A stretch of DNA of 64,000 nt from Lepidodermella squamata (taxonomy: Eukaryota; Animalia; Gastrotricha). Below, piece after piece: positions 2,438 through 31,456 of this stretch. The DNA is taken from contig JBLDXI010000007.1 of assembly GCA_047495785.1 (NCBI GenBank), positions 3,038,001-3,102,000 on the forward strand, written 5' to 3'. The notes below the pieces were generated by a model, which searched no databases, was not told where the DNA came from, and saw only the letters and a program-made list of their open reading frames with translations. A program made the translations under genes and the position numbers. Position 1 is the stretch's first letter; every line of letters begins with the position of its first letter.

Positions 2438-3058
2438 ATGAAAATGAAACCTCCTCACGCCGAAGTTGTTGACTATTTCAACTGCTTCCGCGATGTTGAA
2501 AACTTGATGGGCTACGGTACAATTCGAATGGCGATCGAAGTTGCCAATCGAACGATGAAATACGTCATCCTGCCAATGCTAAGATCCGGCACTAAAGCTG
2601 TCTACTGCGATCCCAGCGTTAATTTCAGATCTTGGACAATGTCTGGCCGGTTCGTAGAACACCTTACTATGTTAAAGTACAAGCCGGAGATCATGCGGAG
2701 ATATTACATCTTTACGCTTCACTTCTTCAAACATGAACAGTTAACAGCTGAACTGTGGCAATTGATGGATGACGACGAGAATCGTGGTGAAAATTCTATA
2801 GCCGATCAAGTTGGCCTGCGAAACATTTCGACTAGCGATGTCTACAAGCGTATCTACAATGAATTGCAGGGTTTGTACCCGTTTTCACTTCAAGCATTTG
2901 CTCGCTCGGCGGTTTTGAGGCAACTACCTTCTGGGTTGGAAAATCGCCGAATGGCCATCGAAGAACTGGATCTTCCTCTTAGTTTGAAGCAATTTCTCAA
3001 TTTTAGCGAGTTGGATTTTGATCCTACAGTCAGTGATGACCCAATTGTTCGCGATTAA
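2438..3058 (+). CDS. SOCS-box family member, C-terminal half only (206 aa)
   Basis: YPFSLQAFARSAVLRQLP...AIEELDLPLSLKQFLNF = BC box plus cullin box. Shares KYVILPMLRSG and RRYYIFTLHF motifs with exon 2 of the other array genes. Acceptor-like AATTAG ends at 2415. No family exon 1 fits in the 300 bp upstream. Confidence 0.75.
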   Translation: MKMKPPHAEVVDYFNCFRDVENLMGYGTIRMAIEVANRTMKYVILPMLRSGTKAVYCDPSVNFRSWTMSGRFVEHLTMLKYKPEIMRRYYIFTLHFFKHEQLTAELWQLMDDDENRGENSIADQVGLRNISTSDVYKRIYNELQGLYPFSLQAFARSAVLRQLPSGLENRRMAIEELDLPLSLKQFLNFSELDFDPTVSDDPIVRD

Positions 3059-4238
3059 TTTCTAAAGTTAAGAAAATAATAAAACAAAATATTTTTTGAA
3101 GGTCAGGATTCTTTTGAGAGCTTAAGCATTTTAGCTTTTTAGTCCGATTTTGGGCCGCGCGCATGCCTGCGAATATTGCGGCGATTTTAGCAACAAAACT
3201 GAATTCAGAAAATTATCTATAGAATAAATAAATTGATTTCGCGTGTGAATATTGAAATGCAACACACTCTAGAATGTTGGTGATGATTCTACAACCGTGC
3301 GTATAACGGGACTACTCCATAACAGCCAAAGAAAAACGGAAGAGACCAAGAGACATTTGAATGGGTGATCCTAGTGGGCCAATTTTTCTACCACAGGTAA
3401 GTTCTTAGGTACAGCTAACGCCAAGTAAAATTTTGCTGTTATCGGGTCGTTCATGAACAAAAGTTCGTAAAAAGTTCGTAAAAAAAGTCGTTCAGTAAAC
3501 AAAATTGCAAATTTACACTTTTCCTTCGATCGCAACCCTGATAGAAAATTGTTCTAATTTTGTTAAAGCAGCCGCAATAATCGAAGTAGCTCTTTAAATT
3601 CAGCGCGCGTGGTCAAATATTATAAAATTATATTACAATTTAGAATTTTTGCGTGCGCGCCCAAGATCACAGTTCTCAGTTTACCCTCCACTTGCGCAAC
3701 ATGATGGTGTCTCAAACTTGGACTCATTCCTCCAAGGTCTCAAAGCGACATTGGGAAATTTCCAGCACGTTAGCATAGTGCAGCCGAAACAGTATAATTA
3801 TAATAAAACGGCCTCTGCGCCTTGGAGGAATCATTCCGCGCACGCACTCCTATTATAGTTGGCGGGTCTCGTTGCGCAACAGCTAATTATAGTAGTGCGC
3901 GCGCGGAGGAAACACCGGCGAGCGGGAGAATTAGCCAAAATTACACGTTACAGGTTACGCGCGCGGTCCAAAATTAGGCTAAGTTTCATTCCGCTTCATT
4001 CAAAATTAGATTAACATTCAAATTTCGCAGAAGCTCACAGTTTAACCTCAATTGCATGATGACTGTTTTAGTGGGATTGAGAAAAGTGTGACACCACGTG
4101 AAGTCTCAATTGAAGTCTCAAGACGCACCTGTTGCCAATAGCAGAAGTCGTATTACTCTTCTCAGCCGAGTAAATCCGAGTCTTCAAACGTTTATTTCTA
4201 ATGTAAATAGAATCGACCCTTTTTGGTTTATTCCTAAA

Positions 4239-4405
4239 ATGAATGCTCATGACGATGAAATTTGCGATCAATTGGTTACTTGCCCGTTATCTGGGCTTAG
4301 CTTTCGCGCAAATATATTCGACTTCCTTCAAGAATTAATCGACGAAGCAGCGGATAGCCTTGAATTGCCTGCCGAGAAGTTCATTTTGGTAACGGATGGT
4401 TATAG
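4239..4405 (+). pseudogene. Truncated exon-1 fragment of SOCS-box family gene
   Basis: AHDDEICDQLVTCPLSGLSFR...ADSLELPAEKFILVTDGY aligns with ANHDEKCDEYTTCPLSGREFR...ASSLELPADEFFMITDGY (6678). Homology stops at ~4405. Confidence 0.8.
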
Positions 4406-5267
4406 AAATTTTTTGGATTCACATTAACTCAAGGCTATTACCGCACATGTTCAAGGCATTAGGAATTTTTCTGGCCATGAGACACAATTTCGTCACTCAT
4501 CGTAGGCTTTTTTCTTGTATTATCGCTGTTTGCGTTATTCATAAAACAAGCTGTAATAGGCTGGCTAAAAAACCAGCAGCGGTATTTTTGATTTATTTTA
4601 TTTCAATTTTGATTTATTTTTATCAAAACTAGCTACAAATGTGAAAAATCCCAAATTTTGCGCGCATCGATTGGACATATCAGGGAAATTCTCATTCATA
4701 AGTTTGCCCTCTATAGCACATGCCGTGACCTAGATTGTACCGCCTTTGATCATTTTACGCTCGCCGTTGATGATAGGCCTTACGCGCTTGTTGGTAATAA
4801 AGATGAGTAAATATGTGCGGCATTTATTTCGTCTGTTTCGCGTGCTCGTGCCAATGAAGACTTCGAAACGTGTTAAATAGCGCTGGTCAGTCTAATAGTC
4901 TTGCTAATCTCATCTTTTCCCCATTGTCCTTCGTTTTCGGTTTTTCGTAAAACAAATCAGTTCGAAATCGATCAATCAAGAATCGCGAAAATAGAAAATA
5001 CAAACTCTAGTTTTAACAAATCGCTATGTTCAGAAAATCTTCTCGAGAAAATCACGTTGAATCTCATTTTCCGTTGTCCCAAGTCTTTGTTATTCTTTTT
5101 GATAATTTGAATTGATAATTCTAAAATAATCAAGTTGGTTACGGTAACAGGAGGGCCCATTCTTTATGTAAGTATCAGGAATTTTTTGAGCATGAATTTC
5201 GGAAAAAAGTCACATAATTGTTTATTTATTTAATTTATTTTACTTATTATTAATCGATTACCAAATC

Positions 5268-6290
5268 GGTAAAATAAAATCTGCCGCCCCAAAAGGTGAA
5301 AGTTCGTTTAATCTCAGCCCTCATTTAATAATAGCGCGCCCTCTCGTTTTAAATACGCGCGCCCTCGTTTTGAAGAGGCGCGCCCTAATAGTAAACAAAG
5401 TCGCCCAGGTTGGTTAAACCACCGCCCAATTTCATTTATTCAATTTGGGCGGCTTTCAGCTCATTTTTCATTTAAATCAGTGCTCCGAAAACTCGGATTT
5501 TTTTCCGGCCGCGTGTGGCCGGCATGGCGGCCGGTTTCTCAAAGAATTGCTGGAATGCGGCCGGAAGCCTAGTTTCGCACGATCATAACCCGAAAATCAG
5601 CTTGTTTTGCACTATTTTCAGCCGGCGTGTAAACACTCGAACGCAGATAATTCCTTGATCCCCGGCAAGTCGCTTTAACGCGGCGAGCTTGCAACACCTT
5701 CGACAGGCGTGCGAGGGGCGTAGCGGGTGTATGAACTTTACACGCGGTGTGCAATTATTAATAAAATGCTTGAAGAGACACGCTTCCACGTCGTAATTTG
5801 TTCGGCCTGTAATAAGCATCCCTTGAACATAAAGCCGCCCCTAAACCTGGCCGTTAGACGATTGATAAGTGTCTCATGTCCTAACATGTCCCTGCTCAAG
5901 CATTAGAGGCTATTGCTTTTACGGATATTGCTTCGCTGCTCCGATTGCCAAATTGTCCCAAAAAATCGTCCGCTCGCTGTTAATCATATCCCAGGTGGTA
6001 GGCATTTTGGTTCTTATACCGTTTCAGCCGATGTTATGTTGATACCAATGAAGGAATAGAGGTGCGGCTAATAGGCGCATCATCATCACATTTGCAATTT
6101 TCTTATTTTAACGGGGCGACGTTTTATATTTCAAGGCGACTGATTATCAGTCAGGTGCGGCCTTCCGCCTTGAGGGGCGGATTAAGGCGAATTAGTGCGG
6201 CGATCGCGCAATGAGGGCGACTTTATTTATTGTTAGGCGACACAAATGGGGCGAACTTTTACCTTTTTGGGCGACAGATTTTACCTCACC
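5268..6290. mobile_element. Non-autonomous DNA transposon/MITE with long degenerate TIRs
   Basis: taaaatctgccgccccaaaaggtgaaagttc (~5276) is the reverse complement of gaacttttacctttttgggcgacagatttta (~6253). A further inverted pair aaagtcgccc/gggcgacttt lies inside. No transposase ORF. Confidence 0.7.
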
Positions 6291-7291
6291 CATTACCTAA
6301 TCGCCAGAATTTTTCATTGCAATTTTCCTTAATTTCTGGAAAATTCCGAAAACAGATGAATTTCTGAAAGATTTACTCACACTTTGAATGATGTCGCGCC
6401 AGAACAGTGTGCCGAAAATAGAAACAAATGGCGTAATGCATTTGATGCGCAGAAAAAACTGGCGTTCAACTTTTTTCCAGCGATCATAGGCACGCGACTG
6501 ATTTGGCGAAGATGCAAATAGCTAGTTTTACGCCATTTGTTTCTATTTCCGGCACACTGTTCTGTGAAAGTCTCCCAGACAAGCAAGAAATAATGACGCG
6601 TTTCTTAGGCTCCTTCGGGTAAATTTTGTACCCTCAGGTTAATTCACTGTCAATAGATCTTTAAATATTCTGGTTGAATGATCGAAGCTAACCATGATGA
6701 GAAGTGCGATGAATACACAACTTGCCCGTTATCTGGGCGTGAATTTCGTGAAAAATTGGACGATTTCTCGCAAGAATTGATCAAACGAGCTGCTTCCAGC
6801 CTAGAATTACCCGCCGACGAATTTTTCATGATAACTGATGGCTACATGATTAATAATGGCTACGTCATAGCGCTGGTGCCATGCCGCTTTCTTGGCAATT
6901 TTCTGGCTGCTGGGCGGCAAAGTGACCCGCAAACTTTCGGCTCAACTCTAATTCAATGCTGCCTCGATCGAGTAATGACTTCAGGCCCGAAATTTAGCCC
7001 AAATGACGCTATCCTTCTGTACTTGTCTATCTGCTTCGCGCAATATGAACCTTTGAAAGCTTTCATGGAATCGAGAGGGCACCTCATACCACGCTGTTAT
7101 CTTCAGGCTATGTTAGAGCCGGCGTTCAAAACCCACGCTGATTGTCTGAAGAGCGCGCCAGGGCATCAGAATTACGCCCCGTTCGGGGTCCGATGTGAAG
7201 CTGTCGACCTTTTGATGGAATCAGGGGCTGATTTAGCGACGTTATCTGCTCGCGATTGTGAGCGTGAGTTTCCGAGAAATTAAAAATGTTA

Positions 7292-7735
7292 AGTTGCGCA
7301 ACGATTTTGTAAATTTGCGAATTTTTGAAGAAAATTGAACTAATTTTTTGAAATTTAGAGAATTTTCACGATTTTACCGAAAAGTAAAAAGAATGTACTG
7401 GAGAAACCCCTGAAAACCCCGATGGTAACTGGTTCAGTAATTTTCCGTTTTTACCTGGTTGGATCTAATTTCATCGGATTTTTTTAATCCCATTTGCAAA
7501 TTGGCGGAAAAGGAATCACAAACTCTAAAACGATAGGAAAAGTTTTGCTGACGGCCAAAAAAATCCTTGAAGAAAAATTCAAAATGGAACAAGAATAGCA
7601 ATAAAGTAAAGCAATGAGTTAATTCCGAGGAAATTTTGTGTAAAATACCGAAAATTACCGAACCAGTTACCATCTGGATTTTCAGGGTTTTTTCTCCGGT
7701 AAATTCTTTTAATTTTCGGTAAAATCGTGGATAGA
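7292..7735. mobile_element. Intronic fold-back remnant of a Tc1/mariner-like MITE family (also 16936-17379)
   Basis: Inverted arms ~7365-7452 / ~7643-7733 (gatggtaactggttc / gaaccagttaccatc). The same sequence occurs at ~11000-11180, where it ends in cttatgggacacgctgTA (TA|CAG terminus). Confidence 0.6.
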
Positions 7736-8064
7736 ACATTCTCCCGGTCTTTTTAGTTAAATAATTAGGCGAATTTTCTACAAAATTTTGCGAAATTGGA
7801 AAATTGATGAGAATTGATGATTGAAAGGTTGATGAGAAATCTCGCTGGAATTTAAAATTATTGGTAAAATTATGGAATTAACTGACCGGACTTTCTTGCT
7901 TTTTTAACCTATTTTCAATCACTAAGAATTATCTGCCATTTACTTAATAATTCTTAAAAATTCTATTAAATTTCAGAAATTCTTGGCAATATTTTCAGTA
8001 GCTATCTTCAACTTGGATTTGATCAGCAAGTTCCGACTGAAGCGCTTGGAAACGTGTTTAACAA

Positions 8065-8486
8065 ACGATAGGAAAAGTTTTGCTGACGGCCAAAAAAATC
8101 CTTGAAGAAAAATTCAAAATGGAACAAGAATAGCAATAAAGTATAGCAATGAGTTAATTCCGAGGAAATTTTGTGTAAAATACCGAAAATTACCGAACCA
8201 GTTACCATCTGGATTTTCAGGGTTTTTTCTCCGGTAAATTCTTTTAATTTTCGGTAAAATCGTGGATAGAACATTCTCCCGGTCTTTTTAGTTAAATAAT
8301 TAGGCGAATTTTCTACAAAATTTTGCGAAATTGGAAAATTGATGAGAATTGATGATTGAAAGGTTGATGAGATTGAAGATTGAAGGCGCTGTGGTGAGGC
8401 GCCATAACTTAACGTTTTGTTAATTCCTAATTGCTAAATGTCGAAAGACAAATTGCAAAATAAAACAGTATCAGTATCAGTAACAA
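8065..8486 (+). mobile_element. Chimeric insertion: copy of the gene's own intron plus a non-LTR-like 3' tail, 6-bp TSD
   Basis: 8065-~8370 repeats ~7530-7835. Then ~115 bp unique sequence ending AATAAAA-cagtat-cagtat-cag. TAACAA is present at 8059-8064 and 8481-8486 but only once in the intact copy. Confidence 0.7.
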
Positions 8487-9657
8487 GGTGACGAAAACTC
8501 TGCATTTTCCTCCTGATTTCTGGCTTCGCTACCTCAATCGACCTCTAGCGCACCTTGAAATTTTCTTCCACAATCCGTCAATTCTGAGCTACATCATGAA
8601 AGAATTTGTCGAGATTAAATTGCCTGATTCTGGCAACTTCAAGCTGAACTTTTTCGATATGGTCAACCCCAGCCAGTATTTCGATAATCATGCCGTCAGG
8701 CCTTATTTAGCCCTGAAGCTCGTCGCCTTGCCTTATTTGAGATCTGGCCTGCCTATCGATAACATTTCTTGCTTAACCTCGCCGAATTACGCCCGGCGGC
8801 TTGTCGAAGACTGGGATTGCCGGTGACTTGGGCGGTTACATCGCGAAACGATACTTCCTATTCGCCTTGCACTTCATGGATCTCAACGGCTTTAATTTAT
8901 CTAAAATAATAAATTTTACGTCAGCTCGCGGGAGTGAAATTTTCGATTTATTCATCGAATCAGGTCGCCAATATCCATTCACGCTGCGGGGATTTTGCCG
9001 CCGCGTTATCTTGAGGCATCTCCCAGCTGGCGTGAACAGGCGCCCAGCGGCGATTAAATCGCTGGATATTCCGAGCAGCTGGGAGGACTTTCTGAATTTC
9101 AGCGATTTGGATTTCAAAGTCGACTGGAATGTTGTTACAAGGTTTTTGGCCAACCGCAGCTTTAATGATCTGGATTAACTCGAAAACATGCGCCAAAATG
9201 ACAATTTCGTTGAATTTACACCTGTTCTCGTTTTTTGTTATCGTTTTTACGGATTTTCTTTGACGCTGATACGTTATACTTTTATTTGCTCATTTTATTA
9301 TATTATCACCGTTTTTACTCGAGTTCCAGCTTTGACTTGTCGTAACATCTACTTGTTTTGTTATTTATGAAGTATTTATCGATTTTTCGTTCATAATATT
9401 CCGTGTTTTTTCTCTTTTTTTTAGGTGTAATTTTGATATTAAATCTTCATGGCAAGCCGCGGCAAACGATGCTCTTGAAAAGGTTTTCCTCGAGATCCTC
9501 GAATGGGTCCTCGAATTAAGCTGTATTTAAATTTGAGCGTTCTAAAATAATTTTCATTAATAATTTGTTAATTAAATTAAGCGTTAAATTTTCTTAGTTC
9601 TTAGTCTTAAAAATTCTCACCGCCAGGAATGATTAACATCAGATATACCCTCAACTG

Positions 9658-10030
9658 GGGTGACTTTTGCATCCCAAAAATCGAAGATAGTAAGGTAAAT
9701 ACCCCGTGAGTGGGGTGCCGTTGGATAGCCCAAGGAAAAGCCAGCCTGAATGTGTGCAATGCACATCGATACAACCCATCTAGGGACATATAATAGCAGG
9801 GTAAGTTTTGAGAAAATTTTGAAATGTTTTTATTAAAACTTTGGTGACTGCCCAATTGAAACGGTATGATTAAACTGATGCGATTTTCAGACAGCATTTT
9901 CTCCGGGCTATCCAACGGTACCCCCATCGGGGGCATTTACCTTACCATCTTCGATTTTTGGTATGCCAAAGTCACCCTATTTTGGTACGTCAAAGTGACC
10001 CCACTGCCCAAAGTCACCCTATTTGACGGT
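9658..10030. mobile_element. MITE-like inverted repeat with aaagtcaccc subrepeats (also ~18893-19270)
   Basis: Arms 9658-9730 and 9905-9978 are near reverse complements (gggtgactttt...ttggatagccc / gggctatccaa...aaagtcaccc). Confidence 0.7.
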
Positions 10031-10793
10031 AGATATGTGTTACTAACTTTCAAGCGAAAAAATATCACATGTGTGTACTCTATCCAGCGAATCCAGGGGT
10101 TGAATACTTGTCCAATGCGATCGTTGATCTTATTGCGTAAGACAAATGGGTCAAGTTGAGCACGATTCGACCCGGTTTTCGACCCTGTCCCAAACTGGTC
10201 GTGACCCAATTACGATCACGCGGTCGCGATTTTGATGGGCCGTGCTTGTCCCAATTTTCCATTGAACATTTTTGCTCGATATGTCGTGATAAGAAACGTT
10301 GTCGCCATTCGTGACCTGATGGTTGTTTCCTCGTGATGTATATTTAGCATCTCCAAGTCATGTGATAAACGTCAGGCATTCGATAAGAAAATTGGTTCAC
10401 GGATAATCATTCACGTCCGTTTTCTAGCGAAAGCACGTGCTTGGAATTTTAAAATGCGTCATATCAGTCCCATTTTGGTTGTTACTGTCGTAGTGCTGAT
10501 CATTTTCGCCGGAAAAATCGCTTATTTTTTGAGTTTGACGTGTTCCCTGAAATAGCAATTATTTTTATTTTATTTTGCCCACACCCGATAGACGCGTATT
10601 TTGCGATATGAGCGGTCTAGGTTCGAGGGGACGGAGTAATCGGTATCGATTTTCTGTTATCGATTAAATAAATCAGTCGTTATCAGCCGAAGAAATTTTT
10701 CATAATTATCTGGGTAGCTACAATATTCAATCTAAGGGTAGTTGGGTGCATCATCGAACGAGAAAGGCAATACTGGAAATCGAAAACTCCTTA

Positions 10794-10972
10794 TCCCACT
10801 CACAAGAGGCATACTTTACCTACTACTATTCTTATGGCATTTTAGATTTTTTTAAGATTTTTCTGACCATTAGACATGACTTCCCCTCTCATCATTTTAG
10901 TAGGAGAAATCTTAGAAAAATCTAAAATGCCATACGAATAGTAATAAAGTATTATGTCTCTTGTGAGTGGGT
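10794..10972. mobile_element. Hairpin MITE (longer version at ~20019-20238, TTAA-flanked)
   Basis: tcccactcacaagag...ctcttgtgagtggg terminal inverted repeats; TTAA on both sides in the 20-kb copy. Confidence 0.7.
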
Positions 10973-10999
10973 TTAAAAAATCCGAAGAAAGTTGATCCA

Positions 11000-11180
11000 G
11001 CCAGGTAAAAACCGAAAATTCCCGAACCAGTTACCATCGAGTTTTCCGGGTTTTCTTCGGCAATTTTTAAATTTCTTCGGTAAAATCATGGATAAAGGAT
11101 TGAAGACTCCTCAGTTGGCTAAATTTCAAAAATTAGTTTCGATCTTTTAACAACTTTGGAAATTACAAAATGGTTGTGCA
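11000..11180 (-). mobile_element. Tc1/mariner-like MITE end (also ~20265-20465)
   Basis: Reverse complement begins TA-CAGCGTGTCCCATAAGTTGC. Homologous to the intronic element at 7292-7735. Confidence 0.55.
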
Positions 11181-11683
11181 ACTTATGGGACACGCTGTAT
11201 CAGATAAGGTATGAATAGCAGAGTATATAGCAGCGACTAATATGGTTTTAGGCTTTTGATAGATGATAATTATTGGTGGCAAATTTTATGGTTTAAATAT
11301 CGCTTTTTCCAATTGTTACATAAGGCTTTCAGGAGGCAACTATTGTCTGTGGCGCCCAGTCGCAAATATAGCTAGCGCGCGATGCCAAGATCGCGTGCCT
11401 GTACGTAAAATTGTTTTTTTTTGAACTTTTCATCAGACAGCTATGTCACCCGACAACCTACATCTTTTGTTAAATTTGCCTAAATTCAAACTTTGCCGAT
11501 CATTTTTGAACTATATCGCCTAGCCCAGGAACCTGAAAACTTGGTTCTTTACATTCGATCCAAGGCTCTTACCGATTCGAGGACTAGAAATGATTTGTGG
11601 AACCCGTTAATTGGCGGAATCGGGACTTCAAAATGACGTCCTTAGACTTGTTGTACCCTTAAAACTGGGTTCTTGCATGTCTC

Positions 11684-11708
11684 TGTGTGTGTGTGTGTGT
11701 GTGTGTGT
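11684..11708. repeat. (GT)n microsatellite
   Basis: Seen directly; the duplicate at 20950-20984 is (CT)n(GT)n with a different length. Confidence 0.95.
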
Positions 11709-11719
11709 TTGAATACATG

Positions 11720-12010
11720 GGCCATGTGCTTCGTTGATCAAGCCGATGCATTGAAGGGCGAAACAAAACGCAGCCATCTGCGATGTTTGCTCCTCAATTT
11801 TTATGAAATTGAAATGCGTGAATTATTTAAAACTGCTAAGAACAAGCGGCTTCGCCCTCTGCCACTCCAATAATTGTGATGTCTCAAGATTTTGAATAAC
11901 AAGTACCTTTAGCAGTTGAAACTATATCAGTTATTTCGGCGAAATTTCTCAGATTTTCGGATCTCGACTTTGAATGCGATTTTGAAGATGATGCTACATA
12001 CTACTCTCAT
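11720..12010 (+). pseudogene. Decayed SOCS-box exon-2 relic related to the 21799-26253 gene
   Basis: MCFVDQADALKGETKR vs ICFYEQAGTLSGETKR, and tttctcagattttcggatctcgactttgaatgcgat vs tttctcaaattttccgatcttgactttgaatgcgat. Contains stops and frameshifts; preceded by a (GT)n tract. Confidence 0.75.
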
Positions 12011-12536
12011 GATTATTTTAATATTTCAGTAAAAAAATTTTTATTCGAAATGTGGAATATTTAAATTTTGCTTGGAATTTGTGTGCGAATTTTTCTTCAT
12101 TCGAATTCATTACCCTTCAGCAATCCTAAAGCCTAAAGCTTCGAATTTTTCGGGTTTTTTAATTTAAAGCCAGCCGGGAAAACCTCCCATCAATGGATTT
12201 CGTCAAATCAATTGGATACTGAAGAATTTCCGCAGTTCCTGGAACTCAACATAAAAAAACGGAATACTGAAAATTTTAGCAATGGAATTGAGGAAAAGGT
12301 GGAAGTCCTGTTGGAAAAATATGTTTGGCACGCGAATTTTTTATTAATAATCAACATTTTTTCTTTTCATGAAATTTCCCATCCTCTCTAGTCAAAATCA
12401 GCTTTTTTGAAAGATCCAAGATACTTAATTATATTAGTAAATCCTGAGAATTATTCCATCTAAAAGCTCAGGAAAATGTTATTTTTCAATATTTATTGCC
12501 TCAATTTTTACGATTTCTGATTTTTAGAGCATTAAA

Positions 12537-12736
12537 ATGAACGATTTTGCTGGAGCTGGCGAACCCACCTCTGAAATCGAAGCTTACTTCGCATCTCTAA
12601 ACAGCCACGACCCCCACATTTTGTGCAAAAGAGACGAGCGATTCAAAAATTGCCCCCTCGAAGCTCCGCAATTTCGCAAAGATTTCCGGCAACTCGTCGA
12701 GCGTTTGATCCTCGATGTTCGAGCTAATTGCAAAAT
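12537..12736 (+). pseudogene. 5' fragment of the 21799 gene cut by the duplication breakpoint
   Basis: Near-identical to 21799-21998 (MNDFAGAGEP...RANCKI), then unrelated sequence and a stop. Confidence 0.9.
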
Positions 12737-13570
12737 ACGCGTAATATGGAGGTCTATCGGTTAGGCATGGTAACAAAAAATTTGAGATTCCAGTGAAGAC
12801 TAGAAATCTGAAAAAACAATAAATAGGGGAAATGTAGGGCTGGAGTCTCAAATTTAGTCCTGAAACCATAGATTTAGGGTGCGCACTTGGCACATCCATC
12901 TAATATGCCCGAACTGTGGCAGCTCATCAAACTATTTTCACAGCCGGTAAAGAATTGCGGCCGGCTATTAGGCCCCTTTCCAGCCGCAATTTCACTTTAA
13001 TCCTGATCCGGCCGCTGGCAATAATAAAACAGAAACTTTCCGGCCGCAAACCTCTTGAAGCAAAAAATGAAGGTTCGGAGTATTTTTAAGCGAACGATCA
13101 GTTTGTAAATTTGATTTTTTGGGTGTTACCCTACTTGGAAGTGAAAATTTAAGCATGGTGTAATTTCATCCACTTTTCACGGCTTCAGTTTTCCCAGCAT
13201 AAAATTAGGTAATAGAGGAGTTTTAAAGCTGAAATCGATGTATTAGAACCTGACTGGTTATGAAAATCCACATTTGTAAGCGCGTGGATCTCCGGAATTT
13301 CGTAAAAATCGTGTGCGATTTGCTAATTTTTGGTTATTCTTGCTTTCTGGTTTTCAGGGCATAAGAACTTACAAAAAATGGTATAAATCGGGTATAAATC
13401 GATGAATTCAATCGCCCAAAAATCCAATTTCGCATTTTTGGATTATTATTGTTTTCCATATTATTTTTTTTATATTTGTTACGCAACTTATGCGTATTAT
13501 CGTAACTATTTGTTTTGACAATTTTTAAATCTGGTCCTGCGGTTCTATGTCAATGGAGCAAACGAAAATT

Positions 13571-13720
13571 GAGCAAAATGACTTTTGAGCAAAACGAGAT
13601 TAGAGCAAAACGACACGAGAGCAAATTTTATTTAAAATAAACAACAGCTGCAATTAATTATAAAATTTGCTCTCGTGTCGTTTTGCTCTAATCTCGTTTT
13701 GCTCAAAAGTCATTTTGCTC
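13571..13720. repeat. Perfect 60-bp inverted repeat (fold-back element remnant) at the duplication junction
   Basis: 13571-13630 is the exact reverse complement of 13661-13720, with a 30-bp spacer. Built from gagcaaa subrepeats. Ends 5 bp before copy 2 begins. Confidence 0.95.
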
Positions 13721-13882
13721 TAATAAAAAGTGTGACACCACGTGAAGTCTCAATTGAAGTCTCAAGACGCACCTGTTGCCAATAGCAGAAGTCGTATTAC
13801 TCTTCTCAGCCGAGTAAATCCGAGTCTTCAAACGTTTATTTCTAATGTAAATAGAATCGACCCTTTTTGGTTTATTCCTAAA

Positions 13883-14049
13883 ATGAATGCTCATGACGAT
13901 GAAATTTGCGATCAATTGGTTACTTGCCCGTTATCTGGGCTTAGCTTTCGCGCAAATATATTCGACTTCCTTCAAGAATTAATCGACGAAGCAGCGGATA
14001 GCCTTGAATTGCCTGCCGAGAAGTTCATTTTGGTAACGGATGGTTATAG
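13883..14049 (+). pseudogene. Truncated exon-1 fragment (duplicate of 4239-4405)
   Basis: Identical translation to the 4098-4427 ORF. Confidence 0.8.
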
Positions 14050-20994: not shown

Positions 20995-21290
20995 GGGCCA
21001 TGTGCTTCGTTGATCAAGCCGATGCATTGAAGGGCGAAACAAAACGCAGCCATCTGCGATGTTTGCTCCTCAATTTTTATGAAATTGAAATGCGTGAATT
21101 ATTTAAAACTGCTAAGAACAAGCGGCTTCGCCCTCTGCCACTCCAATAATTTTGATGTCTCAAGATTTTGAATAACAAGTACCTAAAGCAATTGAAACTA
21201 TATCAGTTATTTCGGCGAAATTTCTCAGATTTTCGGATCTCGACTTTGAATGCGATTTTGAAGATGATGCTACATACTACTCTCATGATT
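20995..21290 (+). pseudogene. Decayed SOCS-box exon-2 relic (duplicate of 11720-12010)
   Basis: Same degenerate motifs as the 11.7-kb copy. Confidence 0.75.
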
Positions 21291-21798
21291 ATTTTAATAT
21301 TTCAGTAAAACATTTTTTATTCGAAATGTGGAATATTTAAATTCTGCTTGGAATTTGTGTGCGCATTTTTCTTCATTCGAATTCGATGTCAATTCGAATT
21401 ACCCTTCAGCAATCCTAAAGCCTAAAGCTTCGAATTTTTCGGGTTTTTTAATTTAAAGCCAGCCGGAAAAACCTCCCATCAATGGATTTCGTCAAATCAA
21501 TTGGATACTGAAGAATTTCCGCAGTTCCTGGAACTCAACATCAAAAAAACGGAATACTGAAAATTTTAGCAATGAGGGAAAGGTGGAAAAATATGTTTGG
21601 CACGCGAATTTTTTATTAATAATCAACATTTTTTCTTTCTTAAATTTCCCATCCTCTCTAGTCAAAATCAACTTTTTTGAAAGGTCCATGATAGTTAATT
21701 ATATTAGTAAATCCTCAGAATTCTTCCATCCGGAAAATGTTATTTTTCAATATTTATTGCCTCAATTTTTTACGATTTCTCTTTTTTAGAGCATTAAA

Positions 21799-24700
21799 AT
21801 GAACGATTTCGCTGGAGCTGGCGAACCCACCTCTGAAATCGAAGCTTACTTCGCATCTCTAAACAGCCACGATCCCCACATTTTGTGTAAACGCGACGAG
21901 CGATTCAAAAATTGCCCCCTCGAAGCTCAGCGATTTCGCAAAGATTTCCGGCAACTCGTCGAACGCTTGGTCCTCGATGTTCGAGCTAATTGCAAAATTT
22001 CAGCCGATAAATTGGCCGTGAAGGAGTTACAGCGTTTAACCTGGTCGGCTAGCTGTTCGCATTTGAAAGCTATCCCGACCCGAATCTGCGGCGAGTGGAT
22101 CATCAATTGCAGGGAATTCTCAGCTTACAACCGCCATCAAATTCTGAAATGCTTCTACGGTTGTTTCATGGCGAGACGCGAGAATCTCACGGTCCAAGCA
22201 TTTCAAGGTATCAAACCACGGCTGAGCCATGTCGATTTTCTATCGCTGTATCTGTTCGCAATTTTCGGCGAGAAGAAGCAATTCTGCGAGCTTTTCCACG
22301 TAAAATGGCTCCACAACCTCGTCCCGCCGTGTTTGGCATCCGCCCTGTTGAAGGCAGCCTTGGATCCTAACTGCGACGATTTTGCCGATGAAAAGCCTGA
22401 TCGAAGTCCGATAGCGTTGTTCCTCTTCGAAACAGGCGTTCATGTGAACAATTTCATGGATTTGGAAGGTTAATTTGAAACTTCGATTTATCGATTCAAG
22501 ATTTTAACAACAGTGTGTCCCATTGCTAATAAAAAGAACGAAAATACACGGAAATGGGATCAAAAACTCTAAAAGGGGAGGCGAATTCGTGTCTCATGGC
22601 CGGAAAATTCAAAGTGAAATGAAATTGTTTCAAACATTTACAAAATTCAAATTTGGTACGCGTTTTAGTTTAATCGAATTCGGTTAGTCTTTGGTGGCAG
22701 TCTTTCCTGTTGCATTTTTTGGCCTGGTCCGGGACCAGCCATGTTAGCAGAGTGATTGAATGGCTTGGATCGAATTTCTCTCGATAAGGCATTTAAATTG
22801 GCAATATTTTTGAGGAATAATTCCAACTTGAAGTGAAAGAAAAAGTATTTTTTGCTGAGTACATGAGGGGTCGAATTTCCGGGTGGATGAAAAATATATT
22901 TATCGAATTAAACGAAAATTTCCAAAACGATCAATTTTCAGGACAAAATTATGGTTAGATCGAAAACGATGTTGGCAAGATAAAAAATGGCACAGCCCCA
23001 GTAATTATCCGTAATAACCACGTGGAAGATTATTGGAACGTTAGACGAAAAGACCATCGCTAGATTCGGGATCAGCGCGAAATTCCGCGTGAGAAGAAAT
23101 GTTTCATGACTCCTTCCATGATGTTCCCCTTTCAAGGGACAATAAATTCTATCACTCTCAAAATTTCAAATTCATTGGCCTTTTCACCCTTTTTACTCGC
23201 AATTTCCCGACAATTTCCAGAACATTTTCATCGGTTATAATTTTCGATATTTTACCTGATGGTACCATTTTTTGGATTTTTTTTCAACTTTCATACATAC
23301 CTAAATTTTCGTATTATTTAAAGCATACTGGCCGTGAAACGGACATCGCCTCTCGTTTTCGAGGTTCTGAACCCTTCCCCGCGAATTTCCTTCGATTACA
23401 CAGTATTTTTGTAATTTCAATTGCCCAAGTTTAAAATTTTAATTTTTTAAAATTTTTAACTTTATTTACCCGAAAATGCATTTTCTAATGGGTCTTACTT
23501 TTAGCGGATCCAAAATCCAAATTTGCCTGAGTTAGCAGAACCGAATTGGAATTTGGAATTTTCATAGGGCCCAAAACCAATTTTCGAGCATTTTTAAGGA
23601 TGTCATGATGGTTATGTCCCGTAAGCGCAACCTCAGGAGCGTAACCTCGCTTGTGCGTAACTTTTCGTGTGCGCAACCGATGTGCGCAACTATTGGGCGA
23701 AACCTGCTGTGTGTAAATAAATAAGTAAAAACTCGAGGTAATTCCCATTATAGTTCAACCGCACAAAAGTGCACATTCACGGAATTTTCAACTAGCCGTG
23801 TATTTGTCTACCAAATTCGCCCAACTCTGCGAACACAAATTAAAAAAATTAATTTACCTTATTTGCTCCAATAGCAGCCCGTGCTACTAAAATTTCAACC
23901 TCAAATTTCGAAAATTTCAAAAAATAATTGTTGGTGAATCGCTCATTTTTTATGTGACTTGACTCCTCAACCCTGGGCTACTTTTAGGGATGGGCGATTA
24001 TTAGCGGATGGGCTACTATTGGAACAAATAATACGGCCTTTAAAATGTAAAAAAATTGTATTGTGTTATGAACGGAGCTACAGTTTTGATCACCATCTTA
24101 AACCGTTTGACAGCAGACATTTATTACTTTAAGTGTTGAGAACATGATCCCCCTTAACATAAATAGCACCCCGGCCGTAGCTGTGAGCGGATGAAGAATC
24201 ACAGTTACTAAGCGGACGCGGCAGGTCTCTGAGACTCAAAATGAATCAATCTCGCAAACAAAATGGATTTTGAAATGTGGCTATTAGCTGTAGACGGGCA
24301 GCGAGAAATTTTGATAAATTACTGCGAGGCCACGCTATTAGGCTCCTGTGACGAAGTCGATGTTCGCGTTAATATTAATGCAATTACTATTACGACCCAC
24401 CTTGATAAATATAAAAAAGTAAACACGGATGAAGTATCTCCTGAAAGCGGAAAAGCGACAAGTCCTTTTGGAGATCAAATCTCAACGGGCTATGCTAAAG
24501 CAAACAAGCCGCTGTGAGTGCAGCGCGCCCTCACACATAGAGTCACCCTCACCATCCTCGTCGCCTCTCTACAACTCCCCATGGTCTCCGCGCAATGAGA
24601 CACATTGCGGAACCACTAAATAAGAGCTTAACTTAGGCGCGCACGCTGATTGGTCAATTGATCCTAGCTATGACTCCGGGATTTTTTGCGCACTTTGATA

Positions 24701-26253
24701 ATTCCAAAAATTGCGTACCTATAATAAGTAAGATCATAGCTATAATAAGTCGAAGGACTTGATTTATAGGTGACATTTCGTCAGCGGCGTTTAAAAATTA
24801 ATGGTAATTTTAAACCTTGGCATACAGTTGTAGCATAAACGCTTTTGACAAAGGAAAAAAATTACCGAATTTTTTTTATAATGTAGGGGTTTATCACCCT
24901 AGCATATAGGGTTTCCATTTTTCTCCCTGCTTTATGGTCAAAAAAATTTCCACCGTCTTCTGACAATTTTCCAGCTTAAATACAAAAGGTTGCGCACAGC
25001 AAAAGTTACGCACAGAAAGTTACGCACGTGCGGTTGCGCTCTTGAGGTTGCGCTTACGGGAATTGACCGTCATGATTGATCAGCATAATTTAAAATAAAT
25101 TATCTTTGAATTCAGCATGAAATTCTGTATAAGACGCACTCTTCATTATAGAATTCATAAATTGCCTTAATGTCGTGAAAATATTCGAAAAGCGACCTTT
25201 TTCTTATCTAAAATTAGGTTCCGCAACAGGCAAATTTGGTTCCGCAAAAGGATATTCTGTTTTCTAATTTTGAAGAATTTCATGAATAATAATAGGAAAT
25301 TCCAATAAATAACCGAAATTTTTTGCATGAATTTCCGAATAAAGTCTAATCATCACTTTTGGAAAACTGGAATCTTTATCAATGAAATTCTTCGAAAAAT
25401 GACACTTAGCTAATTTATGAATTTTGGCTTTTCATTCAATTTTAACAATAATTTTAATATCAATGTTTCAGCTTCAATTCGAGAAATCTGTCGTCAATTC
25501 AAGTTTTCCGACCTATTTCAAAGTTCGAGAGACCTGCTTAAGCGAAAAGAAATTCTGTATGCTGTCGTTAGAGACATTGGCTACACGAAAATGACGCTGA
25601 GAGTCGATCGTGAACTTTTGCTGTGCTTACCCATCATGCTGGCTGGCATTTGCTCGAACCCAGGCGTAATTGAGGTGATATGTAACGGCGTTACCGGCGA
25701 ACCGTCCACTCATCACTTCGACTGGTTCAGCTATTTCAGCTTTTTGGAGGACAATAATTCGACGATCGGCGATTTCGATATTGACGAAAATGACGAAGTC
25801 GACGAAGTCGACGAAGTTCCAGCAAATAAAAAAACTGATCTCATGTTGAAATTTTTGATCACGCCCATGTTGAAGTCTGGCTTTTTGCACACGTGTAAAT
25901 TCAACGCTAGACTGGGCTGTTATCGCAGAAAGCCATGTGACATTTGCTTCTACGAACAAGCTGGCACGTTGAGTGGTGAAACGAAGCGTAGATACCTGTT
26001 ATTTGCCCTTCAATTCATGAAATGGAACTGCGTTGACTACTCCGGGTCCGGTAGGCCCTATCCCTTGTCACTTCAAGGCTTTTGCCGCCTGGCGATTTTG
26101 AAAAAATTACCGTTCGGTTTGAATAATCGGCAAAAGGCAATTGAAGGTCTGAATCTACCGGATAATTTGACGAATTTTCTCAAATTTTCCGATCTTGACT
26201 TTGAATGCGATTTGGACCTGGACGATGATGCTGCATCGGACTATTCTGACTGA
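21799..26253 (+). CDS. SOCS-box family gene B (~483 aa), join(21799..22468,25472..26253)
   Basis: Donor GTTAAT at 22469 and acceptor TTTCAG ending 25471 give a phase-1 in-frame join. ALFLFETGVHVN half-ankyrin. SOCS box YPLSLQGFCRLAILKKLP...AIEGLNLPDNLTNFLKF. The 3-kb intron is filled with nested elements. Confidence 0.8.
23604..25076. mobile_element. ~1.47-kb TIR element inside gene B intron, nested in an older TIR element (~23500-25255)
   Basis: tcatgatggttatgtcccgtaagcgcaacctc vs gaggttgcgcttacgggaattgaccgtcatga (inverted), with gcgcaacc/gcgtaac subrepeats. Outer inverted pair ccaaatttgcctg / caggcaaatttgg. Inner pair ttatttgctccaatagcagccc / gggctactattggaacaaataa (~23860-24030). Confidence 0.7.
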
Positions 26254-26338
26254 GTTGAAATATCTCGATTATTTGGCCTATTTTTCAATTTGAATTTTTG
26301 GGCTGATTTTTTGAATTTTTTTTAGGTTTTTTTGCAAA

Positions 26339-27927
26339 ATGGTTATTTCTTTCCCAAATCATGAAAGTCTTCCATGTTTTGAAATCGATCGACCCTGCCG
26401 ATTGGATTCCGAAGATTTTCGCCAATCTTTGACTTCAACCCTTGAGCGACTGGTCGAAAAACTTCAATCGAAGCATAGCTCAGTGGAAATACGGCTGAAA
26501 ACGCCGTCAACCCAGCATGGCTCAACTATGTACGAGTTCGTAGTTTTCGCCGTTCCGAAATCGATCTTCGGCTCGTACCTGATTTTAACGAAAGGATTTG
26601 ACGGTCGAACGATTGGCGACGTCCTTCTCGATTGCTGCATCGAATTATTGAATGAGCGTGGTCCAAGTCCGGAATTTACTTCACTAGACGCTATCATCCT
26701 TACCCTAGCTGCTTGTTTCAACAGAAAAGATGCGTTTGAGCGAGTTTTCGATTCGAAAATTTCCGAAATACCTCGTTGCTTTCTATTGGCCTTGCCTGAG
26801 ATTGCCATCATCTCCAGCTCAACCGTTCTGTATTACCGAAACAGGCCTCTTCGCGTGTCGATGAATTCCGGCAAAAGTTGGGCAGTTTCGAAGCTGCTCG
26901 AAGCCGGCGCATTCGTCAATCCAGAAATTTCTCGAAGTAATTTCACTTTTATTTTTAAACGCTGAAATAAATTTTTTGATTTTTGAATATTTTAAAATTC
27001 CATTCAATTAAATATTTTAATAATTAAATATTGGATTGTATGTATTCATTTTCAAAATTTAAATTTTTTTAAATTTGAAATTTTTGGAACATTTTTTTAA
27101 ATTTCTTAAAATTTGAAATTTTTTTAAATTCAGCTGCTATTAGGTTTGCGATGATAGAATATGGCCGTCACCCGTTGGACCCTGATTTAAAATCACTGGA
27201 ACTCGATGAAGTCAATAGAAATCTTCGCTATTTGTTGGAAAAATTGCCAAAATCCACATTTTCTAATCGAAATTTTGTCAATTTTATTTGCGGCTTTATC
27301 CGAATCGCTTGCCATTTTCCTGATTTTATCAATCAAGTCTACGATGCCTTCATTTCAAGTTGCGATTATCCATCGATAAATTGGTTCGCAATTTTCAACT
27401 GGGACATGCTCAGGTCCAGTGAAGATGACAGATTCGCTGCAACTTGTCTGCGCCTTAAATTCAACGCTCTTCAAGCTCTACGATCCGGAGTTCGACCTTC
27501 ACCCGATTCCAGTTTGGATTTAACTATAAATCAGCAGAAACTCGTTGAACACAGCCTGTTTCTGAGCAAATTTGACGTCGAAATCGCTCGAAAATTCTAC
27601 TTGTCTTCTCTCAATTTTATCGGACTAAAAAGTTGCACGTCCGATGCGATGCTTCGCGCGTATAAAAATGCCTGTCGTAAGGTGAAAAATGCCCCGGAAT
27701 TGGCGAGTTACCTAGAAGCTATCCGAGCTTTCCCATTTTCGCTGCAAGATTTCAGCCGACGGGCCATCGTGCGAAGCCTGCCGATGGGTGTTGAAGCTCG
27801 CCGAGTGGCGATCAAGTCACTGCAACTGCCGCTGTGTCTCGAAAACTATTTGAATTTCTGCGACTTAGATTTTGACGTTGATTCTAAATTCTTCGCTAAT
27901 TTTTCTGGTCTAGATCGTGATGATTAG
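26339..27927 (+). CDS. SOCS-box family gene C (~463 aa), join(26339..26936,27134..27927)
   Basis: Donor GTAATT at 26937 and acceptor ATTCAG ending 27133, phase 1. AVSKLLEAGAFVN half-ankyrin. SOCS box FPFSLQDFSRRAIVRSLP...AIKSLQLPLCLENYLNF. Confidence 0.87.
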
Positions 27928-28418
27928 CATTTTAATATCAAGTCTCATTTAATGATTATTGTAAATGATGATATAGCAGCTCGGGCTCTGAAATCTCAAA
28001 AATAAAAACTTGTGATAGCCATAATTTTGATTTTTTTTTAACCCTTCATTTTAATATTAGCAACCGCATTTCGTCTCATTTTGTTTAGTGATGAGACGTT
28101 GGCCTATAATTCATTTTTTATATGTTTAGATTTTGGCCATAATTTGTTATCGGTGAATTTTTTTGGAGCTATTTTATATCGAACCAATTCTGAGGTGAGT
28201 CTGATATTTTCAACATACCTTTTCTCATTTTTTTTCATTTTTGTTCCACTGAGTCGTAGGGACAATGACGGGAAAATAGCAGTTTATGATTAAATTGCTG
28301 GCCTAGTTGCCGTAGTTCTTGCGTTTTTTTCAAAATCACTTGAAATAATAATTTCTTAAAATTTTGGATTTACCGGTTCCACTAAGTACTGTACTGACCT
28401 CCGATGTTTTCATCGATC

Positions 28419-29276
28419 TGTAGCTTCGTCGCACTTATCCTAAGAAGTAGAGGTTTATTACACTTTGATAGAATAGAAAATTACACTTTGATGGCTGTGT
28501 AAATTACACTTTGATAAGTAGATGAATCATATTATTGTCGATTTTTTTCTGCTGCGCAGCTCTTCGAGAAAATACGCTAAGTCAGAGATTTCAGCTGATA
28601 GCTGATCACTCAAACAACAAGACAATACTTTGCCCCCATTACCATGCGAGCGGAGCGAGCATGTGAGCCGGCCTCGATAGTTTTTTTTGTGTTGAGTCAT
28701 AAGTACGGGGAGAGTTTTCGAAATTACCAAAGTTTCAAGTGATACTTTTTGATTGGGGTCCCGTGCTACGATGGGTTACGTTACTTCTTGGTCAATGATT
28801 TGCATATGCACACGTGCTTGTGTGTGCAAAAAATGCTGTGCGCGCGTGCGAACCGAAACAAAAAAACTAGCAACACGAGCTGGGAGCGATCTCTCAGCGC
28901 CAATTCAGCTGCACTGCTGATGGTTTTTCGCAATAAAAACTGTCGCGCATATGCAAATCAACGCCATTTCTTTGCCGCATCTCACTAAAAAAGGTGGTGA
29001 TTGCTTTTTAATTGAAGGTTACGCATTATTACCAGCTAGTTATTCTGCCCGTTTTACGCTCTAGTAGTTTACTGCGATGAAGCTAGTTTTTTGGAGGGGC
29101 ACCTCAGCCCCCTGGGGAAAGCTGGCTGGTAGCTTTTTGGGAGGCCTTTCACTAGGTCTTCAAAAAGCTGCCAGCTTAGTTTTCCCCAAGGGAGCTGAGG
29201 TGCCCCTTTTTAAAGCTAGTTTTATCAAAGTGTAATTTTCATTTATCAAAGTCTAGGGTATGCGTCGAAACTGCAG
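28419..29276. mobile_element. Degenerate TIR element with internal hairpin
   Basis: attacactttgata repeats at ~28457-28515 are inverted against tatcaaagtgtaat at ~29223. Internal palindrome ggggcacctcagc...gctgaggtgcccc (~29096-29205). Confidence 0.55.
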
Positions 29277-29997
29277 TATGAATCGTAATGTGCTGCTGCA
29301 TGTTGTAGTATTTATATTTTTCTATTATGTTGGCCATTTTACGTTGAATCCTCGTCCTGACTCATAAGCACGCATTTTATACTATCTCGAATTAATAGCA
29401 GTTTTTACACAGCTCATATAGCTTACCATGTTGAATTTATGCCTGACTTTATTGTCGTGATACTATTTTCAGGTATTTTTCAAAACTAACCGCAACCGTT
29501 TACTAAAAAAATTGCATTAGCTCCTAAAGCAAAATGATAAACCAACTGCAGTTCTTAGAAAATAATGTTCCTAAAAATAAATGTTTATCTGGAAATAATT
29601 TATTTTCTAGAGTATTTAATTTCTCGAATTGCTAGAAGACTCGACGATTTCACATTTTTGGCTGTCACAAATTCGCAAACAAATGATTTTATTGTCAAAT
29701 TTGGAATGAAGAGGCCTTTTTAAATATCATGAAAACAGCAGATTTTCTAAAAAATCTCAACCTATCCGTAAATTTCTAAGGCATTGGGTTCAACACGGAA
29801 AATTTGACGAACTATTCAACCTCTTCTCTCGAGTTGTGATTTGAACAATTATATAAGAAATATGTACACTACCCTATTAGACGATATTTTCCTGCTGAAT
29901 ACAAACTTCCATTACAAAAACAATATGGATTGATATGACGTTATTTGTTTTATATGTTCCGTGTACCTATTTAGACTAATTACTGTTTGACGCGAAC

Positions 29998-31456
29998 ATG
30001 AATTTCGATTGGAGAAAGTACCTGCCAAAAAGCGATTTCGATGCAGATAGCTTGCTTATATCCCCAGAACTTCTTGAGCAAATGACAACATCCGTCGACC
30101 TATTGATAGCTGATTGCACTCAAAAACTCAATCTGAATTCTGGTAGTCTGAAAATGATGGCCGAAGTCAACGGCACGTGGGAACATCAGTACCACTTCAG
30201 CTTATCTCTAGTCCCAAAATGTTATTCTGAGGACTTTGTTGTAGTGGCGAAATCAACCGAGCCGGAAATTCTGGCCCGATCGATCATCGATCACTGTATG
30301 AAAGCCATTTTCGACTCCGGAGACGATAAATCTTCAACCTTTATACCGGAAGATGTTATCGCCTCGTATCTAGCCATTTGCTTCGAAGACCGAGATACTT
30401 TGAAGCGAATCCTCGACTCGAAGAAATACGTCATTCCTCCTCAAGTTTTAGGGGCGTTACTGATTACTTCTTTCGGCGAGCGCGAAACACGCAGTGGCAT
30501 CAGAAGATGGGCAGTTGTCAGTCTCATCGAAGCTGGGGTTGATTTCAACTACTTGATGTCAGCTTTCGATAACTTTGACGAATTTTTTCACCATGGCACC
30601 TGGGGAATGGCCCCCGAGTTCAAAAGTGTGCGCAAATTTTACCGAACTTCAAACTTCTATTTTCCCTGATTTTTCAGACCCTTTCGAAATCATCATGGAT
30701 GAGTACGAAAGTGTTGCTATGAATTCTCCGGAAATGGGGGAATTGACCAAAATTGTTCAAGCTTTCATCGACACCGACTGGAAGGAAAACGTCGTAGAAT
30801 GGATGGGCTACCTTATCAATCCTTACTTGAATCTACGTGCATTCGCGCGGAATCCGAAATTGTTCGTAAAATCACTTGAAGAGTACTGCAGCGTGGGAAA
30901 GGCCGGATTTGAAGAGTACGATAAGATAACATTCAACATCGTATCGTTTCTACATCACTCTCACCATTCACGCATCGCCGATGCATACCTTAGACATCAT
31001 TTGGTGTCAAAGTTCATCATCCTTCCAGTTTTACGATCAGGCATTCATGAATTCGGCTGCTATTTCCCGAAGCTTAATGATGAAGATTTTTTGAACGAAT
31101 TGGTGAGATATTGGCTGGAAATGGAGAGTTTGCTGTCTGAAGTCGACCGTCAGAGGCTGTTTACGTCTGTAATGATTTGGGCTGATTGCAGCAAATCTTA
31201 CGATCTTTCGCGGATTCGAAGTGTTTACGATCAAGTTAGCGAAGAACTTGGCGTTACAAGCCCGTCTTTCCTTGAAAAGTTTAGCCGATATCCGTTGTCA
31301 CTGCAGAACTTATGCCGTAGTTCAATCTTGCGCCATTTCCCATTTGGGTTTACAGAGCGTTCGAAGGCTATTCATAAACTGGACGCTCCGTCCTGCATAC
31401 ATGACTATTTAACATTTAGTGATTTGGATTTGGATATTGACTCTCGCTATTTGTGA
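29998..31456 (+). CDS. SOCS-box family gene D (~468 aa), join(29998..30625,30678..31456)
   Basis: 52-bp phase-1 intron (GT at 30626, TTTCAG ending 30677). AVVSLIEAGVDFN half-ankyrin. SOCS box YPLSLQNLCRSSILRHFP...AIHKLDAPSCIHDYLTF. Confidence 0.87.

Follow-up and report, generated by a model that had tools for sequence, protein, structure and literature searches.

A tandem array of diverged ASB-like SOCS-box genes in the gastrotrich Lepidodermella squamata

A stretch of 64,000 nucleotides from the gastrotrich Lepidodermella squamata (GenBank assembly GCA_047495785.1, contig JBLDXI010000007.1, positions 3,038,001 to 3,102,000 of the forward strand; hereafter the window, numbered from its first letter) contains an array of 11 loci of one protein family, all on the + strand between positions 2438 and 31456. 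The array most likely represents a highly diverged, ASB-like branch of the SOCS-box proteins, whose members would act as substrate receptors of Elongin B/C-cullin-RING (ECS) ligases. It is better described as a known kind of protein that has expanded in an unusual way than as a new kind; the family is ASB-like, without orthology to any named ASB protein, and probably descends from ASB-type receptors. Its binding region appears to combine a degenerate descendant of ankyrin repeats with a family-specific cap.

Two approaches, which agree, served to map the loci: a tblastn comparison of the long open reading frames (ORFs) of the left half with the window, and a scan of all six frames with a hidden Markov model (HMM) built from the four intact genes. 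Family coding matches are confined to 2537-31453 on the + strand, and the HMM scan returned no family match between 31.5 and 64 kb. The census comprises four intact two-exon genes (G3 to G6), a C-terminal-only ORF (G1), a broken gene (G2) and five short relics, which matches the initial annotation of this DNA, where at least 11 same-strand loci (four intact, one C-terminal-only, six broken or relic) had been proposed. The loci, with one weaker piece beside them, are as follows.

2438-3058, + strand: G1, a 206-residue ORF with the C-terminal module alone, made up of LP.LRSG, RY.LF.L.F and, at 2879-3001, a SOCS box (28.2 bits and E 2.2e-6 for Pfam SOCS_box); it matches positions 311-457 of the family HMM.
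4257-4397, + strand: exon-1 relic limited to the first ~50 residues, the CPL motif region (tblastn, 58% identity to G3 residues 2-56; HMM positions 10-56, E 2e-5).
6678-9178, + strand: G2, a broken duplicate of G3 with an intact exon 1 (6678-7263) and a fragmented exon 2 (tblastn and HMM scan).
11942-11995, + strand: short relic of a SOCS-box end (HMM positions 447-460, E 0.003), a duplicate of 21185-21271.
12537-12740, + strand: duplicate of the opening 67 codons of G4 exon 1 (95.5% identical to G4 residues 1-67 by tblastn), truncated at the right end of a segmental duplication, which ends at 12736.
13901-14041, + strand: relic of an exon-1 start, a duplicate of 4257-4397 (tblastn and HMM scan).
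16322-18405, + strand: G3, intact, 456 residues, exons 16322-16907 and 17621-18405, SOCS box 18202-18321 (Pfam SOCS_box E 1e-5).
20928-21056: weaker exon-2-like piece near the SOCS-box relic that follows.
21185-21271, + strand: SOCS-box relic upstream of G4 (HMM positions 434-460, E 7e-4; tblastn E 4e-4).
21799-26253, + strand: G4, predicted intact gene, 483 residues, exons 21799-22468 and 25472-26253, SOCS box 26062-26184 (Pfam SOCS_box E 3.1e-7).
26339-27927, + strand: G5, intact and transcribed, 463 residues, exons 26339-26936 and 27134-27927, SOCS box 27730-27855 (Pfam SOCS_box E 8.4e-8).
29998-31456, + strand: G6, intact and transcribed, 468 residues, exons 29998-30625 and 30678-31456, SOCS box 31292-31414 (Pfam SOCS_box E 1.2e-7).

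The products of the intact genes measure 456-483 residues, and in each gene the two exons are joined by a single GT..AG phase-1 intron of 713 (G3), 3003 (G4), 197 (G5) or 52 nucleotides (G6). The splice model of G3 reads AGC/GTGAGT at the donor and TTTCAG/AA at the acceptor, and the long intron of G4 holds an insert flanked by terminal inverted repeats (TIRs; 23603-23653 and 25025-25075). Alignments of the exon-1 and exon-2 products give 24-33% identity between paralogs. The proposal that such divergent paralogs nevertheless keep private motifs holds for most of them, since the motifs are visible in the alignments and the invariant columns include K108, L115, S117 and G118 of K...LP.LRSG; the CPL motif does not hold throughout, being missing in G6 and changed in G5.

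The first line of evidence is the SOCS box itself. Five ORFs match Pfam SOCS_box (PF07525) with 26.1-32.8 bits (E 8e-8 to 1e-5), above the gathering score of 23.5, which confirms the identity initially assigned, and it is the only Pfam family found in the family proteins of the window. The boxes are about 40 residues long and C-terminal, all of them no more than 40 residues from the C-terminus. The BC box was judged by the criterion (S/T/P)LxxxCxxx(I/V/L); in the form (S/T)LxxxC/S/AxxxI/V it is intact in all six copies, with position 6 occupied by cysteine in G2, G3, G4 and G6, by serine in G5 and by alanine in G1. Docking on Elongin C through the BC box is therefore a reasonable inference from sequence, and Elongin B/C binding, cullin use, ligase activity and substrate recognition are all predictions.

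The adjoining Cul5 box is less canonical. None of the six window copies has the LPΦP form, the first proline being replaced by D, Q or N, and the boxes read LDIP, LQLP, LNLP, LDAP or LDLP (LxΦP); the copies do keep the second proline together with L..(Y/F)L. Among 65 family members checked, LPΦP is present in 10 and its first proline is missing in 55. LPΦP is needed for the specific interaction with Cul5, and for SOCS1, whose Cul5 box is incomplete, no Cul5 interaction was detected (review, PMC4812663). Since the first proline is missing, Cul5 is no more than a candidate cullin partner of the window proteins. It is conceivable on these grounds that the proteins bind Elongin B/C without recruiting a cullin; they could then be non-degradative binders, compete for Elongin B/C or serve as adaptors stabilised by it. 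This is nonetheless considered unlikely, because the remainder of the box (ΦP..L..(Y/F)L) varies little, if at all, among highly divergent paralogs, as would be expected if that surface had a conserved partner, and a minority of relatives retain LPΦP. A cullin-recruiting receptor remains the preferred reading of the SOCS box.

The second line of evidence comes from relatives outside the window. Searches and structure predictions were run on the exon-1 and exon-2 products separately. The exon-2 profile of the window genes, compared with 1.84 billion representative proteins, gave 45 hits at E<=1e-3, 11 of them at E<=1e-10 and none at E<=1e-30; the 10 hits looked up are unnamed ORFs of ENA metagenome assemblies. 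The profile search that had been suggested thus yielded no confident full-length match to a conserved ASB ortholog group. Orthology to the named ASB1-18 was not found either, the ASB chains of the PDB matching only in the SOCS box or at generic ankyrin positions, and nothing useful came from word-indexed protein searches for which G6 exon 2, a 12-sequence family alignment and a 665-residue ORF upstream of G1 were used. The contigs that were fetched for the relatives are eukaryote-like, with neighbours including haspin kinase, RabGAP, saposin, CLC channel and TAF1-like genes.

These metagenome ORFs (P0001-P0045, for example P0003, P0010 and P0025) belong to the same length class as the window genes (~420-490 residues) and show the same order of motifs, namely C.G.CPLS, IP.C..SLL..AI....GV..LL..GA.PN, ILPLLRSGA and SOCS box. 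ILPLLRSGA..PDP, a WGR motif and the SOCS box are their common features, and many of them also have the N-terminal C.G.CPLS and the ankyrin repeat IP.C..SLL..AI....GV..LL..GA.PN. They differ from the window genes in being only ~20-25% identical to them, in being single ORFs without the phase-1 intron and in having clearer ankyrin repeats; four (P0006, P0008, P0022 and P0031) carry Pfam Ank above its cut-off. They too occur in tandem arrays: contig L007 holds seven family SOCS-box genes head to tail on the same strand within 11 kb, and two lie side by side on contig L005. Forming arrays is thus characteristic of the wider lineage, and the family, whose relatives come from other samples, is not private to this genome.

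The binding region can be tied to ankyrin repeats through these relatives. The window exon-1 profile aligns to their N-terminal part over 151 columns (hhalign probability 96.9%, E 1.9e-10). It also matches designed ankyrin repeat proteins (DARPins) and natural ankyrin proteins of the PDB at E 1e-9 to 1e-4, at positions 153-202 only, which correspond to one repeat. One ankyrin repeat is thus detectable by profile in the window genes, at the end of exon 1, and the intron sits just before the start of the relatives' next repeat helix. The phase-1 intron of the initial annotation stands, whereas its ankyrin-like 'half repeat' before the intron is one full repeat by profile. Profiles that include the relatives match ankyrin proteins over a longer stretch, and ASB8, ASB9, ASB7 and SOCS4 in the SOCS box. 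Further ankyrin repeats in the window genes are suggested by homology to the Ank-bearing relatives and by weak structural matches to ASB8, ASB9 and ASB7.

Structure prediction with AlphaFold2 was applied to both parts of G5. The exon-1 model, from 20 sequences, reached a predicted local distance difference test (pLDDT) of 81 and a predicted template modelling score (pTM) of 0.83, and shows paired helices after an alpha-beta3-alpha unit (residues 25-107); the exon-2 model (31 sequences, pLDDT 78) is all-helical with the SOCS box at its end. The AlphaFold and Foldseek run proposed at the outset thus provided models for both exons, and Foldseek returned no PDB match at E<=1e-3 for either. In VIA-align, the best score of exon 1 was Z 5.6 (TRPM N-terminal regions, TPR-like proteins and a few ankyrin proteins). 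Exon 2 matched ASB8 at Z 6.3, with 172 residues aligned across the repeats and the SOCS box, ASB9 at Z 5.9 and ASB7 at Z 4.8, and these three are among the longest natural structural matches of this model. Shape searches of the ESM Atlas did not exceed a TM-score of 0.40. Language-model features pointed to ankyrin for exon 1 (0.92, with a low shared-feature count) and to SOCS-box clusters for exon 2, as leads only. The models are compatible with a degenerate ankyrin solenoid followed by a SOCS box, which is not proof of one.

A conserved H..(x)C..(G).CPLS..F motif opens the cap in G3, G4 and G5 (for example at 16322-16400) and in the relatives P0010, P0025 and P0030. Its histidine and two cysteines might bind a metal; this part of the model is of low confidence (pLDDT 51-74).

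Several of these results weigh against the reading as ASB-like receptors. A TOG/HEAT domain scores slightly above the ASB proteins for exon 2 (Z 7.0), and the ASB matches stay below Z 8, which by the calibration of the tool is too low to prove a shared fold and may reflect generic helical-repeat resemblance. The N-terminal cap has no clear structural match in Foldseek, VIA-align or the ESM Atlas, no window protein shows Pfam Ank even at E<=1, and the window's own exon-2 profile gives only a weak SOCS-box match in the PDB. To these is added the LxΦP form of the Cul5 box in all six copies, compared with the LPΦP reported as necessary for Cul5 (PMC4812663). The initial annotation had seen two unrecognised domains beside a vestigial repeat; on that reading the two would be genuinely new domains unrelated to ankyrin, and the single ankyrin-like repeat a chance or vestigial feature. 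SOCS_box as the sole Pfam family, the lack of Foldseek matches for both models, the low best Z values (5.6 and 7.0) and the alpha-beta3-alpha unit at exon-1 residues 25-107, which is not an ankyrin repeat, would all agree with it. That reading is improbable, however, in view of the homology of exon 1 to the relatives by profile-profile comparison, of the full-length colinearity of relatives that have real ankyrin repeats in the corresponding region, and of an intron that falls exactly before the first helix of their next repeat. Most of the protein corresponds, by positional homology, to the region that carries the ankyrin repeats in a wider ASB-like family, and descent from ankyrin-repeat receptors is preferred.

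Two of the genes are expressed. Contigs of two public sequencing runs, one RNA-like by guess (X1) and the other DNA-like (X2), were aligned to 26300-31500, which covers G5 and G6. X1 depth is near zero between the genes and reduced in the G5 intron. A 687-nucleotide X1 contig passes from 30625 straight to 30678 and so leaves out precisely the 52-nucleotide G6 intron that was predicted, with its GT..AG ends, while X2 is unspliced across it; X1 contig ends at 26936 run on into the first 17 bases of G5 exon 2, across the 197-nucleotide intron. The spliced contig is ~97% identical to the window, so its source is a different individual or a closely similar copy. From these joints, G5 and G6 are transcribed and are spliced at the predicted phase-1 introns, as modelled. 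G5 starts 85 nucleotides after the G4 stop (26254-26338), an operon-like spacing, and no AATAAA or ATTAAA follows G4.

The array also displays the traces of its own turnover. A tandem segmental duplication, mosaic and with indels, relates 4082-12736 to 13726-21998. Its left 3983 nucleotides (4082-8064 against 13726-17708) are 99.6% identical and the remainder 92-94%. This event generated G2 from G3 and copied two relics together with the first 67 codons of G4. G2 exon 2 carries a 416-nucleotide insertion (8065-8480) and a 5-nucleotide deletion after 8813, and its frame is shifted before the SOCS box. In the left block, 14 of the 15 mismatches fall in exon 1 (6803-7218; 9 synonymous, 5 nonsynonymous), with a single mismatch in ~3.4 kb of intron and flank. 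The exon-1 synonymous divergence resembles the old 6-9% of the right part, which indicates that intron and flanks were homogenised; the simplest reading of the cluster is gene conversion, either in patches or with a third copy as donor, and not positive selection. The segmental duplication may also be an assembly artefact.

G2 and G3 are the only pair young enough for an estimate of dN/dS (nonsynonymous to synonymous substitution rates), the other paralogs being saturated with branch lengths above 1 per site. For exon 2 of this pair, dS is 0.091, dN 0.019 and dN/dS 0.21, which implies purifying selection for most of the time since duplication. Positive selection was considered and set aside, given the saturation of the paralogs and the purifying selection on the only measurable pair. 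In a tree of the C-terminal 175 residues, the five window copies form one group apart from the relatives, weakly supported at 49/95, G4 is the sister of G3 (100/92), and terminal branches exceed one change per site. The tree fits a local expansion followed by long divergence and is no proof of fast adaptive evolution. The picture of a tandem, same-strand array undergoing birth and death is upheld by the coexistence of intact, broken and relic copies and by ongoing duplication, represented by the 9.3-9.6 kb segmental duplication.

The DNA between the genes is rich in repeats. A perfect 61-nucleotide inverted repeat with arms 28 nucleotides apart, together with 16-nucleotide tandem units, occupies 13571-13720, just before the second duplicate (13726), and is possibly a rearrangement junction. 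A high-copy repeat lies between G5 and G6 (28388-29257; summed X2 contig depth ~900-3900 against ~40-110 on genes) and holds an internal 50-nucleotide inverted repeat (29071-29231). Short TIR elements resembling miniature inverted-repeat transposable elements (MITEs) are found at 7401-7694, 9653-9982, 10821-10946 and 20012-20244, in the G2/G3 intron and in intergenic array DNA. Amplification driven by transposons was rejected as the main cause, the paralogs being ancient in sequence and the one young duplication a plain tandem segment.

It could still be asked whether most of the array arose neutrally from a region rich in duplications and transposons, with copies decaying without function for the organism. 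Seven of the 11 loci are indeed incomplete (six broken or relic, one C-terminal-only), and MITE-like inverted repeats and the high-copy repeat (28.4-29.3 kb) lie between and within genes. Such an origin is very improbable all the same: four pairs of long ORFs (456-483 residues) remain open despite 24-33% mutual identity, G5 and G6 are transcribed and correctly spliced, the young G2/G3 pair has a dN/dS of 0.21, and key SOCS-box residues are invariant. A functional receptor family is thus the favoured explanation.

On the preferred reading, each intact protein consists of four parts: a family-specific N-terminal alpha/beta cap with the C..CPL motif; a helical solenoid that would derive from ankyrin repeats, of which only the one at the end of exon 1 can still be recognised in the sequence; a pre-SOCS module that is conserved (K...LP.LRSG, RY.LF.L.F); and the C-terminal SOCS box. 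[quoted passage not shown] The array itself turns over, in a birth-and-death process, through tandem duplication, gene conversion, insertions and frameshifts.

Two known systems offer a comparison. The ASB proteins (vertebrate ASB1-18, of which ASB9, ASB7 and ASB8 have been solved with Elongin B/C) likewise have a C-terminal SOCS box right after helical repeats, and the BC box is intact here too; one ankyrin repeat is detectable in the window genes and several in the relatives. The window proteins differ in that most of their repeats have degenerated beyond Pfam detection, in the added N-terminal alpha/beta cap with its C..CPL motif, in the K...LP.LRSG / RY.LF.L.F module before the SOCS box and in a Cul5 box of the LxΦP instead of the LPΦP type, and their genes lie in large tandem arrays.

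Among the F-box and BTB receptors of ubiquitin ligases, large expansions confined to one lineage are well known, such as the nematode F-box and MATH-BTB and the plant F-box families. The array resembles them in its tandem, same-strand arrangement, its many highly diverged paralogs, a conserved docking motif next to a variable binding domain and the presence of intact copies beside pseudogenes; docking by the SOCS box (Elongin B/C-cullin), rather than by an F-box (Skp1-Cul1) or BTB domain (Cul3), sets it apart. By this analogy, it can be entertained, as a tentative and rather unlikely possibility, that the family is a diversified repertoire of Elongin B/C-cullin receptors that would mark foreign or selfish proteins (viral, microbial or transposon-encoded) for degradation. 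Such an immune repertoire would be the SOCS-box counterpart of those proposed for nematode F-box and MATH-BTB proteins, built on a cap and a degenerate ankyrin surface.

The array is preceded by one further long ORF.

139-2136, + strand: 665-residue ORF directly upstream of G1 (ORF list).

This ORF matches no Pfam family, and the word-indexed search returned no homologue for it; its language-model features (ARM/TPR/UNC45 at 0.87-0.89) are a lead only. It might be the first exon of G1, since a phase-0 GT..AG intron at 2125-2392 would create a fused protein of 883 residues. An AATAAA at 2189, between the ORF and the G1 ATG at 2438, suggests instead a separate helical-repeat gene followed by a short SOCS-box gene, and the balance leans slightly towards two genes.

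The window as a whole has ~40% G+C and spliced genes, in keeping with animal DNA, and includes neither a conserved housekeeping gene nor the Elongin and cullin genes of the species. On the - strand, 31813-49131 contains two tandem copies of a large multi-ORF unit with laminin-G-like, CUB, MAM (3-4 repeats) and fibrinogen C-terminal domains, which looks like a duplicated secreted or receptor gene. Three ORFs of ~650-670 residues follow at 51819-53789 (- strand), 56259-58277 (+ strand) and 61041-63017 (- strand); two of them show weak ANF_receptor / 7tm_3 (class-C G-protein-coupled receptor) matches below the Pfam cut-offs, and the trio may be a diverged chemoreceptor-like cluster.

A literature search found no description of a lineage-specific expansion of SOCS-box receptors, and mammals have 18 ASB genes. 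If the assignment is true, the binding scaffold of these proteins is so diverged that standard annotation detects the 40-residue SOCS box alone. The absence of the first proline from the Cul5 box prompts a question that can be tested, namely which cullin, if any, serves these receptors. Should they prove to be working receptors, this animal and its relatives would have diversified the Elongin B/C-cullin arm far beyond the mammalian ASB set.

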